The position numbers and the translations under genes were made by a program. Shown piece after piece: positions 41,985 to 45,899 of a stretch of 64,000 bases of DNA; positions within the stretch are counted from its first letter, which is position 1, and every line of letters begins with the position of its first letter. The notes below the pieces were generated by a model. That model was not told the DNA's origin. It did no database searches and saw nothing but the letters and a program-made list of their open reading frames with translations. Where the stretch lies: the NCBI GenBank assembly GCA_002269645.1, contig NIVC01001281.1, forward strand, positions 231,302-295,301, read 5' to 3'. Source of the stretch: Macrostomum lignano (Eukaryota).

Positions 41985-42995
41985 ATTGCTAATCTAGCCT
42001 ATCATGGGTGCAGGAATAGAATGGATTGCTAATCTAGCCTATCATGGATGCAGGAATAGAATGGATTGCTAATCTAGCCTATCATGGATGCAGGAATAGA
42101 ATGGATTGCTAATCTAGCCTATCATGGGTGCAGGAATAGAATGGATTGCTAATCTAGCCTATTATGGGTGCAGGAATAGAATGGATTGCTAATCTAGCCT
42201 ATCATGGATGCAGGAATGGAATGGATTGCTAATCTAGCCTATCATGGGTGCAGGAATAGAATGGATTGCTAATCTAGCCTATCATGGGTGCAGGAATAGA
42301 ATGGATTGCTAATCTAGCCTATTATGGGTGCAGGAATAGAATGGATTGCTAATCTAGCCTATCATGGATGCAGGAATGGAATGGATTGCTAATCTAGCCT
42401 ATCATGGGTGCAGGAGTAGAATGGATTGCTAATCTAGCCTATCATGGGTGCAGGAATAGAATGGATTGCTAATCTAGCCTATCATGGGTGCAGGAATAGA
42501 ATGGATTGCTAATCTAGCCTATCATGGATGCAGGAATGGAATGGATTGCTAATCTAGCCTATCATGGGTGCAGGAATAGAATGGATTGCTAATCTAGCCT
42601 ATCATGGATGCAGGAATAGAATGGATTGCTAATCTAGCCTATCATGGGTGCAGGAATAGAATGGATTGCTAATCTAGCCTATCATGGGTGCAGGAATAGA
42701 ATGGATTGCTAATCTAGCCTATCATGGATGCAGGAATAGAATGGATTGCTAATCTAGCCTATCATGGGTGCAGGAATAGAGTGGATTGCTAATCTAGCCT
42801 ATCATGGGTGCAGGAATAGAATGGATTGCTAATCTAGCCTATCACGGATGCAGGAATAGAATGGATTGCTAATCTAGCCTATCATGGGTGCAGGAATAGA
42901 ATGGATTGCTAATCTAGCCTATCATGGGTGCAGGAATAGAATGGATTGCTAATCTAGCCTATCACGGATGCAGGAATAGAATGGATTGCTAATCT
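41985..42995. repeat. 40-bp minisatellite, array A (PIR-GNPNAT1 spacer)
   Basis: GCTAATCTAGCCTATCATGGGTGCAGGAATAGAATGGATT, about 25 copies. Confidence 0.97.
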
Positions 42996-43009
42996 ACGCA
43001 TTCTCCTCG

Positions 43010-43018
43010 CCACTCCAG
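43010..43018 (+). promoter_or_regulatory. Candidate SL trans-splice acceptor of GNPNAT1
   Basis: Pyrimidine tract plus CAG, branch-like CTAAT at 42989-42993, no matching upstream donor found; phase 0 with the ORF. Confidence 0.6.
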
Positions 43019-45899
43019 GCGTCAAACCCGCATGCGAACGGAGAGTGCAGCGGGGAACCGGTAGATGAGGAGTTTCTATTTGACCCGCAGCTCCTGTTCG
43101 ACCTGGACTGGGCCGGACTGAAATCCCGCACCCCTGTGACCGCCTGCGGAACCATGGGCGACCTGCGGCTCAGGCCTCTTAGCAGCCTCGACTTTGACCG
43201 GGGTGAGTGCAGGTCATCAGGATACTTTAAGTTTCCTGATTCTCCAGTCACAGCAGTGGATTGCCCAATCACAGCATCGGATTCCCCGGTCACACCGGAT
43301 TCCCCAGTCATAGTACCGAATTCCCCTGTCGCATCGGATGATCGGATTCCCCAGTCACACCGAATTCCCCAGTCACATAAAATTCCCCAGTCACACCGGA
43401 TTCCCCAGTCACAGCAGCGGATTTCCCAGTCAGCAGCGGATTCCCCAGTCACAGCAGCGGATTTCCCAGTCACACCAGATTCCCCAGTCACAGCAGCAGA
43501 TTTCCCAGTCACACCGGATTCCCCAGTCACAGAAGCGGATTCCCCAGTCACACCGGATTCCCCAGTCACAGCAGCGGATTCCCCAGTCACACTGGATTCC
43601 CCAGTCACACCGAATTCCCCAGTCACAGCAGCGGATTCCCCAGGCACACCGGATTCCCCAGTCACACCGAATTCCCCAGTCACACCGGATTTTCCAGTCA
43701 CACCGGATTCCCCAGTCACAGCAGCGGATTCCCCAGTCACACCGAATTCCCCAGTCACAGCAGCGGATTCCCCAGTCACACCGGATTCCCCAGTCACACC
43801 GGATTCCCTAGTCACAGCAGCGGATTCCCCAGTCACACCGGATTCCCCAGTCACAGCAGCGGATTCCCCAGTCACACCGAATTCCCCAGTCACAGCAGCG
43901 GATTCCCCAGTCACACCGGATTCCCCAGTCACACCGGATTCCCTAGTCACAGCAGCGGATTCCCCAGTCACACCGGATTCCCCAGTCACAGCAGCGGATT
44001 CCACAGTCAGCAGCGGATTCCCCAGTCACACCGGATTCCACAGTCAGCAGCGGATTCCCCAGTCACACCGGATTCCACAGTCAGCAGCGGATTCCCCAGT
44101 CACACCGAATTCCCCAGTCACATCAGCGGATTTCCCAGTCACACCGGATTTCCCAGTCACACCGGATTCCCCAGTCACACCGGATTCCACAGTCAGCAGC
44201 GGATTCCCCAGTCACATCAGCGGATTTCCCAGTCACACCGGATTTCCCAGTCACACCGGATTCCCCAGTCACACCGGATTCCCCAGTCACATCAGCGGAT
44301 TTCCCAGTCACACCGGATTCCACAGTCACACCGGATTCCACAGTCACACCGGATTCCACAGTCACACCGAATTCCCCAGTCACACCGGATTCCACAGTCA
44401 CACCGGATTCCACAGTCAGCAGCGGATTCCCCAGTCACACCGAATTCCCCAGTCACACCGGATTCCACAGTAAGCAGCGGATTCCCCAGTCACACCGGAT
44501 TCCACAGTCAGCAGTGGATTCCCCAGTCAGCAGCGGATTCCCCAGTCACACCGGATTCCACAGTCAGCAGCGGATTCCCCAGTCACACCGAATTCCCCAG
44601 TCACACCGGATTCCACAGTAAGCAGCGGATTCCCCAGTCACACCGGATTCCACAGTCAGCAGCGGATTCCCCAGTCACACCGGATTCCACAGTCAGCAGC
44701 GGATTCCCCAGTCACACCGAATTCCCCAGTCACAGCAGCGGATTCCCCAGTCACACCGGATTCCACAGTCAGCAGCGGATTCCCCAGTCACACCGGATTC
44801 CACAGTCAGCAGCGGATTCCCCAGTCACACCGGATTCCACAGTCAGCAGCGGATTCCCCAGTCACACCGGATTCCACAGTCAGCAGCGGATTCCCCAGTC
44901 ACACCGGATTCCCCAGTCACACCGGATTCCCCAGTCACACCGGATTCCCCAGTCACACCGGATTCCCCAGTCACACCGGATTCCCCAGTCACAGAAGCGG
45001 ATTCCCCAGTCACACTGGATTCCCCAGTCACACCGGATTCCACAGTCAGCAGCGGATTCCACAGTCAGCAGCGGATTCCCCAGTCACACCGGATTCCACA
45101 GTCACACCGGATTCCACAGTCACACCGGATTCCACAGTCACAGCAGCGGATTCCCCAGTCACACTGGATTCCCCAGTCACACCGGATTCCACAGTCAGCA
45201 GCGGATTCCCCAGTCACACCGGATTCCACAGTCAGCAGCGGATTCCCCAGTCACACCGGATTCCACAGTCAGCAGCGGATTCCCCAGTCACACCGGATTC
45301 CACAGTCACACCGGATTCCACAGTCACACCGGATTCCACAGTCACACCGAATTCCCCAGTCACACCGGATTCCACAGTCACACCGGATTCCACAGTCACA
45401 CCGGATTCCACAGTCACACTGAATTCCCCAGTCACACCGGATTCCACAGTCACACCGGATTCCACAGTCACAGCGGATTCCCTGTCCCACAGGCTACATG
45501 TCGCTACTGCGGGAGCTGACTGAGACGGGCGACGTCAGCCGGGCGGACTTTCAGCGCCGCTTCGCCTCGATGCGGGCCTGCCCTGCCACCTACTTTGTTC
45601 TGGTGGCGGAGGACACCAGCCAGGACAACCGGCCCGTTGCCACGGCAACGCTGATCCGCGAGCAAAAGTTCATCAGGGACTGCTGCTGCCGCGGGCACAT
45701 TGAGGACGTGGCCGTGCTGGAGTCGCACCGGGGCCGCGAGCTGGGAAAGCTGGTGGTGGCGGGGCTGCTGGCGCTGGCCAGGCGGCTGGGCATCTACAAG
45801 GTCAGCCTGGACTGCCACGAGGCCATGGTGCCGTTCTACGAGAAGTTCGGCCTGAAAAAGTGCAACAGCTTCATGATCGCGCGCTTCGCTGATCGGTGA
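43019..45899 (+). CDS. GNPNAT1: Glucosamine-6-phosphate N-acetyltransferase (GNA1), 2 exons; no genomic initiator ATG before the conserved N-terminus
   Basis: Exons 43019-43202 and 45493-45899. [66 protein letters not shown]. The exon opens at acceptor CCACTCCAG|GCG in phase 0. Confidence 0.92.
43240..45480. repeat. 18/21-bp minisatellite (GNPNAT1 intron)
   Basis: GGATTCCCCAGTCACACC / GGATTCCCCAGTCACAGCAGC variants. Confidence 0.95.

Follow-up and report, generated by a model that had tools for sequence, protein, structure and literature searches.

In parasitic flatworms the AUG at the 3' end of the trans-spliced leader (SL) can provide the initiator methionine of the mRNA to which the leader is joined, a function described by Cheng et al. 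(2006) as summarised in PMC9851317, PMC12582326 and PMC3510090. Here we examine the gene for glucosamine-6-phosphate N-acetyltransferase (GNA1, also GNPNAT1) of a free-living flatworm, Macrostomum lignano, which lies in a stretch of 64,000 nucleotides (nt) of genomic DNA (hereafter the window, numbered from its first base) and has no genomic start codon ahead of its conserved N-terminus. The start of GNA1 is likely to be donated by the AUG-ending SL, joined at position 43019. Like the cases of Cheng et al. (2006), as those summaries present them, GNA1 combines an SL ending in AUG, an acceptor in phase and a conserved N-terminus upstream of any genomic AUG. The earlier cases, again as summarised, come from the parasitic Neodermata and have cDNA and reporter evidence, whereas GNA1 belongs to an early-branching, free-living species and is described from genomic and annotation evidence alone.

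The SL AUG is known as an initiator in Schistosoma and Echinococcus, and every flatworm SL reported ends in ATG (PMC12582326). In the SL cDNAs of Echinococcus granulosus (PMC3510090) the SL AUG is likewise needed for an N-terminus that matches conserved orthologues; these cases rest on sequenced SL-containing cDNAs, whereas GNA1 is known here from genome and annotation. In some of the E. granulosus cases a second AUG follows within a few codons, an arrangement that the neighbouring gene for Pirin may share at the present locus. Further afield, the slORFs of nematodes, Oikopleura and trypanosomes (slORFfinder, PMC9851317) are open reading frames (ORFs) that are likewise created or completed by an SL-borne start codon; they were found by ribosome profiling and mostly use a near-cognate NUG within the SL, whereas in M. 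lignano a true AUG forms the last three bases of the SL.

The single SL of M. lignano (CGGTCTCTTACTGCGAAGACTCAATTTATTGCATG) is 35 nt long, has ...TTGCATG at its 3' end and directly precedes a GTAAG donor; the SL acceptors of the species are enriched in the motif [T/C]TNCAG (PMC8629364). The leader is added to 30-39% of M. lignano genes (PMC8629364, PMC5730564), and Wiberg et al. (2023, PMC10468722) remark that in Macrostomum its final ATG is where translation is likely to start. The locus described here shares with the accounts of Ustyantsev and Berezikov (2021, PMC8629364) and Wudarski et al. (2017, PMC5730564) the SL, the acceptor motif and the arrangement in same-strand clusters with repeat-inflated spacers, enriched in conserved housekeeping genes; neither account analysed whether the SL AUG serves as a start codon, and our search of the literature found no catalogue of SL-AUG-dependent M. 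lignano genes.

The GNA1 gene and its 5' end

Over the GNA1 gene the window is identical to M. lignano scaffold NIVC01001281.1 (assembly GCA_002269645.1, Mlig_3_7), and the best match of the gene product is the M. lignano protein PAA69904/PAA79585 ('BOX15_Mlig009203g33, partial'), at 100% identity. By homology the gene is GNA1/GNPNAT1, a glucosamine-6-phosphate N-acetyltransferase of the GNAT superfamily. In a tblastn search human GNA1 matches exon 2, which holds the GNAT core (45% identity, E = 8e-28), and the Pfam domains Acetyltransf_1, Acetyltransf_7 and Acetyltransf_10 are present on the identical NCBI protein. The best-matching solved structure is that of human GNA1 (PDB 2HUZ; E = 7.8e-36), whose chain residues 4-182 align with residues 17-194 of the 197-amino-acid (aa) model, and the C. 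elegans structure 4AG7 matches with E = 7.9e-32. The coding sequence is divided between two exons (Table 1). Their intron consists almost entirely of minisatellite and varies strongly in length between the genomic copies of the gene, and the frame of exon 1 continues into it as an open frame of 495 codons (ORF 42986-44473), so that a retained intron would introduce no early stop.

A preliminary description of the locus, made from the DNA letters, had stated that the acceptor preceding GCG opens phase 0, that the nearest upstream in-frame ATG is closed at once, that the ATGs just inside the exon are out of frame, and that the product is in phase with an SL AUG as M-ASNPH..., 197 aa. Each of these statements agrees with the sequence and its translation. 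The splice boundary ...CATTCTCCTCGCCACTCCAG/GCG (ccactccag/GCG) puts the first base of the exon at 43019; ATG 42968 runs into TAG 42977 after three codons; and the ATGs at 43032 and 43065 lie in frame +1, opening frames of 10 and 18 codons. From ASNPH to FADR the genomic coding sequence amounts to 196 codons, which a donated methionine brings to 197 aa. Between the TAG and the first in-frame ATG, that is in 42980-43153, a search for an in-frame ATG found none, and no in-frame near-cognate codon occurs inside exon 1 before the conserved N-terminal motif. When the SL is joined to the exon at 43019 the sequence reads ATG/GCG in phase 0 and continues as M-ASNPH... into the GNAT core with no intervening stop.

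The existing annotations bear on the same boundary. Two independent, transcript-informed annotations leave GNA1 5'-partial: the NCBI protein is marked 'partial' and has no start codon, and the first residue of the UniRef entry A0A1I8I8V0 (P0028, 196 aa) is the codon at 43019 exactly. The older UniRef models with an initial methionine (P0002, P0003) take it from the out-of-frame ATGs and are frameshifted.

The conserved N-terminal segment

GNA1 of M. lignano carries the metazoan N-terminal extension with its FDPxLLxxLDW motif, which begins 26 codons and ends 14 codons upstream of the first in-frame ATG at 43154. The exon 1 segment was aligned to vertebrate orthologues and compared with PDDTPLFDPQLLLELDW; the axolotl N-terminus in this alignment reads PDDTPLFDPQLLLELDWS, and 10 of the 12 motif residues are shared. 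A profile of 36 columns, built from vertebrate GNA1 N-termini alone with the GNAT core excluded, was run against the 2273 six-frame pieces of the window and matches the exon 1 frame only (E = 0.005, next best 1.6). In an AlphaFold model residues 21-30 have a mean pLDDT of 91, residues 1-4 and 6-14 falling below 50. By codon position the GC fractions of the upstream 45 codons (.67/.49/.71) are coding-like, with a weaker third-position bias than exon 2 (.63/.43/.90).

A segment so like vertebrate sequence, adjoining the core on its upstream side in the same frame, must be translated, and the gene must therefore have a start codon upstream of 43076. The preliminary description had placed the conserved LFDP.LL..LDW segment upstream of the first in-frame methionine and had proposed an alignment to GNA1 orthologues; the motif indeed precedes ATG 43154, the vertebrate N-termini match the frame upstream of MGDLRLRP, and 2HUZ aligns from its residue 4. 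It is this homology that is the non-random element, being in phase by itself being a one-in-three event; 28% of the trans-spliced mRNAs of S. mansoni are in frame, a figure of Cheng et al. (2006) as cited in PMC9851317. Since no in-frame genomic AUG precedes the conserved N-terminus, a full-length protein depends on the SL AUG. The broader claim that GNA1 needs the SL AUG holds for the conserved N-terminal extension and does not extend to the GNAT fold, which would be whole in a product from ATG 43154.

The proposed SL acceptor

The 3' splice site CTCCAG before 43019 fits the motif enriched at M. lignano SL acceptors and is preceded by a pyrimidine-rich tract and a branch-point-like CTAAT motif (Table 1). 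Most of the spacer further upstream is occupied by a 40-bp minisatellite array, which is found upstream of GNA1 in all three genomic copies. This 40-bp satellite lies in like orientation on both sides of GNA1, again in three of three copies. The left array, from which the branch-like CTAAT comes, stops at ...GCTAATCTA/CGC at a distance of 22 nt from the acceptor, and the right array picks up again with a degenerate unit at about 46657.

We propose that the pre-mRNA is trans-spliced by the SL at CTCCAG/G (43018/43019), which would give the junction ...UUGCAUG/GCG UCA AAC (predicted as ...TTGCATG/GCGTCAAACC and, in reads across 43019, as ...ATTTATTGCATG/GCGTCAAACCCGCATGCG). The SL AUG would then be codon 1 of the 197-aa protein M-ASNPH...ADR, of which the genome would supply all but the initiator methionine. 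The satellite-filled, ATG-rich spacer upstream would be thrown away as outron; in an unspliced 5' untranslated region (UTR) its satellite ATGs would spoil initiation. The SL sequence has no match in the window when as many as 3 mismatches are allowed, so that the window holds neither an SL RNA gene nor a cis-encoded SL-like exon. Two other nearby AGs, CTAG/ of the satellite at 42957 and GCAG/ within the exon at 43050, were considered as SL acceptors and rejected, these being out of frame or leading into stops. Names and identifiers of the locus (Mlig009203, Mlig020065, GNPNAT1, DTD2) were looked up in the supplements of four M. lignano papers, with no matches.

A number of observations count against a start donated at 43019. 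The YTNCAG motif is by itself non-specific (397 found in the window, 379 expected). The NCBI coding sequence of GNA1 starts not at the acceptor but 12 nt inside the exon, at 43031 (HANGEC...); exon bases 43030-43034 (GCATG) repeat the 3' end of the SL, and this start may be an artefact of the annotation pipeline in which the repeat was trimmed as part of the SL. The exact SL-initiated proteins MASNPH... (GNA1) and MAAARLL... are not present in a collection of 15 billion proteins, from which the product beginning at Met47 is likewise missing. The three genomic copies are too alike to serve as an evolutionary test, exon 1 showing one non-synonymous and one synonymous difference.

The main rival reading starts from ATG 43154. 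This codon stands in a perfect ACCATGG context, whereas the SL AUG would have U at -3 and G at +4, and the structures of the Arabidopsis (3T90), yeast (1I12) and Trypanosoma enzymes begin near ATG 43154, which would therefore yield a whole GNAT fold. On these grounds, and with the third-position GC content of the upstream 45 codons (0.71) lower than that of exon 2 (0.90), translation might start solely at 43154 to give a 151-aa enzyme of the fungal and plant type, the 135 nt upstream being 5' UTR and the resemblance to an N-terminus a decaying relic. We regard this as unlikely. The upstream segment is in frame, free of stops and specifically matched by the vertebrate N-terminal profile, a match that would be lost over the divergence between flatworms and vertebrates if the segment were untranslated; its frame opens exactly at the acceptor; such a 5' UTR would contain two out-of-frame AUGs; and this locus has need of SL-donated starts, as the adjoining gene, DTD2, shows. 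Given the conserved, translated extension, the 151-aa product cannot be the sole product. Leaky scanning to 43154 may nonetheless produce a shorter, probably active isoform alongside the full-length protein: some ribosomes may bypass the SL AUG with its weak U at -3 and begin at 43154, making the 151-aa enzyme that lacks the N-terminal extension; scanning on from the SL AUG to 43154 would be burdened by two out-of-frame AUGs.

Other sources of a start codon

An upstream cis exon carrying an ATG and spliced to 43019, which the preliminary description had named as one finding that would overturn its reading, would remove the need for an SL AUG; the gene would then be conventionally capped, or trans-spliced further upstream. 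Flatworm acceptors often serve both cis- and trans-splicing (PMC12582326), satellite-rich spacers assemble poorly from RNA-seq, and the spacer does hold 10 weak GT sites with an in-phase frame opened by an ATG. An unannotated exon of this kind is nevertheless quite improbable. The + strand of the 1.9 kb from the Pirin stop to the acceptor (41122-43018) contains no GT[AG]AG donor, a form found in about 65% of the donors of M. lignano (PMC8629364), and neither of the two transcript-informed annotations has a cis exon, one of their models beginning at 43019 itself. A cis-spliced fusion of Pirin to GNA1 was rejected, both Pirin donors being phase 1 and so out of frame with an acceptor that requires phase 0.

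Non-AUG initiation on an RNA left unspliced at 43019 would have two in-frame codons at its disposal between TAG 42977 and the exon, TTG 42986 and ATC 42992. Both fall where a strong 3' splice site has its branch-point region and pyrimidine tract, the unspliced leader would hold some 50 satellite ATGs, and inside the exon no near-cognate codon precedes the motif, which makes this route very improbable.

Finally, M. lignano has many duplicated genes in a polyploid genome and GNA1 is embedded in satellites, so that the gene might be a non-functional duplicate which has lost its start. We give this hardly any credence. In the two further genomic copies (L002, L003) exon 1, the acceptor and the upstream satellite are all as in the window copy, and the three copies, which span 2869, 2506 and 1085 nt, are alike in 5' architecture and have all kept their ORFs and splice sites intact. 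A search of the M. lignano proteins found no GNA1 copy with an ATG. The enzyme is essential for the synthesis of UDP-GlcNAc, which further counts against the loss of the gene's function.

DTD2 and the same-strand cluster

The preliminary description had cited two consecutive cases, and the second, downstream of GNA1, is borne out by DTD2/ATD (Animalia-type D-aminoacyl-tRNA deacylase 2). Its single-exon ORF of 165 codons contains no Met codon. The first codon directly follows the acceptor CACTGCAG/ (cactgcag) at 47781, and the frame is closed upstream by TAG 47691, with no ATG between this stop and the ORF. The sequence is 100% identical in three genomic copies, and residues 8-167 of mouse ATD (PDB 5XAQ) align with DTD2 residues 2-165. 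Unlike that of GNA1, the NCBI coding sequence of DTD2 begins exactly at the acceptor, where the predicted SL junction would read ...GCATG/GCCGCAGCCCGC. DTD2 is in these respects a stricter and cleaner candidate for SL-AUG dependence than GNA1. A 24-bp satellite (TCTCCCATGTGCTGGAGCTCTGAC, 19 copies) overlaps the end of the DTD2 coding sequence, where the conserved C-terminus ...SHVLEL and the stop are encoded by the first satellite unit; the array looks like a tandem amplification of the last 24 bp of DTD2.

GNA1 lies inside a cluster of genes on one strand (+), in the order Pirin, GNA1, DTD2 and a short-chain dehydrogenase (SDR). The Mlig_3_7 pipeline divided transcriptional units into genes by trans-splice and poly(A) signals, and the transcriptional-unit prefixes Mlig009203 and Mlig020065 are common to Pirin and GNA1. 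From the Pirin stop to the GNA1 acceptor there are 1897 bp, of which 1442 bp are tandem repeat; the repeat-adjusted spacer of 455 bp, on the same strand, lies within the limit of <1 kb by which M. lignano operons are defined (PMC8629364).

Pirin and the dehydrogenase have start codons of their own. With the candidate acceptor CTCCAG/CGC (39621/39622) of Pirin, the SL AUG would become the third in-frame codon before the gene's own ATG (MRQMSRR...), whereas at the alternative acceptor TTCAG/ it would open an out-of-frame ORF of 64 codons. At the acceptor of the dehydrogenase, which also has its own ATG, the SL AUG would lead only to an out-of-frame ORF of 22 codons. Since XRN1 on the minus strand, Pirin and SDR all retain their ATGs, that of XRN1 standing directly before GVPKFFRW, the missing start is gene-specific and no assembly-wide artefact. 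The remaining genes of the window are listed with these in Table 1. Some 40 minisatellite arrays, together with two long tracts of (AGAC)n, fill the introns and spacers of the window.

Table 1. Features of the GNA1 locus and of the remainder of the window, in order of position
Feature	Position	Strand	Remarks
XRN1-type 5'-3' exoribonuclease	2632-10775	-	own ATG at about 10776
DNA ligase with PARP-type zinc finger (LIG3-like)	18646-22974	+	
(AGAC)n tract	20723-21650		
Cytochrome P450 gene	26180-27289	-	
Pirin	39628-41121	+	3 exons; own ATG 39628; annotated 5'-partial from 39610
40-bp minisatellite array, left	41984-42996	+	about 25 copies (TRF); fills most of the Pirin-GNA1 spacer; ATGs in every unit
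In-frame TAG	42977-42979	+	closes the GNA1 frame upstream; also ends ATG 42968
CTAAT, branch-point-like YTNAY motif	42989-42993	+	putative function; branch A 42992, 26 nt upstream of the AG
Pyrimidine-rich tract	42998-43016	+	15 of 19 C or T; runs into CTCCAG
3' splice site CTCCAG, proposed SL acceptor	43013-43018	+	AG 43017-43018; fits [T/C]TNCAG
GNA1 exon 1	43019-43202	+	phase 0 at first base (GCG = Ala2); ends in phase 1 before GTGAGT (G/GTGAGT donor)
Upstream ORF 1	43032-43064	+	out of frame (+1); 10 codons and stop
Upstream ORF 2	43065-43121	+	out of frame (+1); 18 codons and stop; begins directly after the stop of upstream ORF 1
Metazoan GNA1 N-terminal motif (FDPxLLxxLDW)	43076-43111	+	by homology; residues 21-32 of 197 aa
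First in-frame genomic ATG (MGDLRLRP)	43154-43156	+	Met47 of the SL-initiated protein; ACCATGG context; possible secondary start, 151-aa product
GNA1 intron 1 (GTGAGT...CCCACAG)	43203-45492	+	nearly all 18/37-bp minisatellite (43278-45482)
GNA1 exon 2, coding part (GNAT core)	45493-45899	+	acceptor CCCACAG/GC; TGA 45897-45899
40-bp satellite, right	46668-47465	+	like orientation to the left array
DTD2/ATD	47781-48278	+	single exon; TGA 48276
24-bp satellite	48256-48709		begins within the DTD2 coding sequence
Short-chain dehydrogenase (SDR)	49438-51780	+	own ATG
(AGAC)n tract	58816-59199		

Discussion

The most likely origin of the GNA1 start is an SL junction at 43019 together with the use of the SL's own AUG. 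GNA1 is thereby a well-supported further example of the known SL-AUG mechanism and introduces no new mechanism. It appears somewhat more probable than the contrary that GNA1 and DTD2, two consecutive housekeeping genes of one operon-like cluster, have lost every usable genomic start, so that trans-splicing would be obligatory for their translation, beyond its part in capping.

For annotation, the reading implies that '5'-partial' models such as PAA69904 and DTD2 are probably complete once the SL AUG is added, and that older models were mis-started at out-of-frame ATGs. The Met-free ORF of DTD2 offers a particularly clean test case in an animal that is tractable to transgenesis (PMC5730564). 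If the starts of these genes are indeed donated, SL-AUG initiation as documented in parasitic flatworms would be extended to a free-living macrostomorph model, which would place the initiator function of the SL AUG at the base of Rhabditophora, and the loss of genomic starts would act as a ratchet that locks trans-splicing in.

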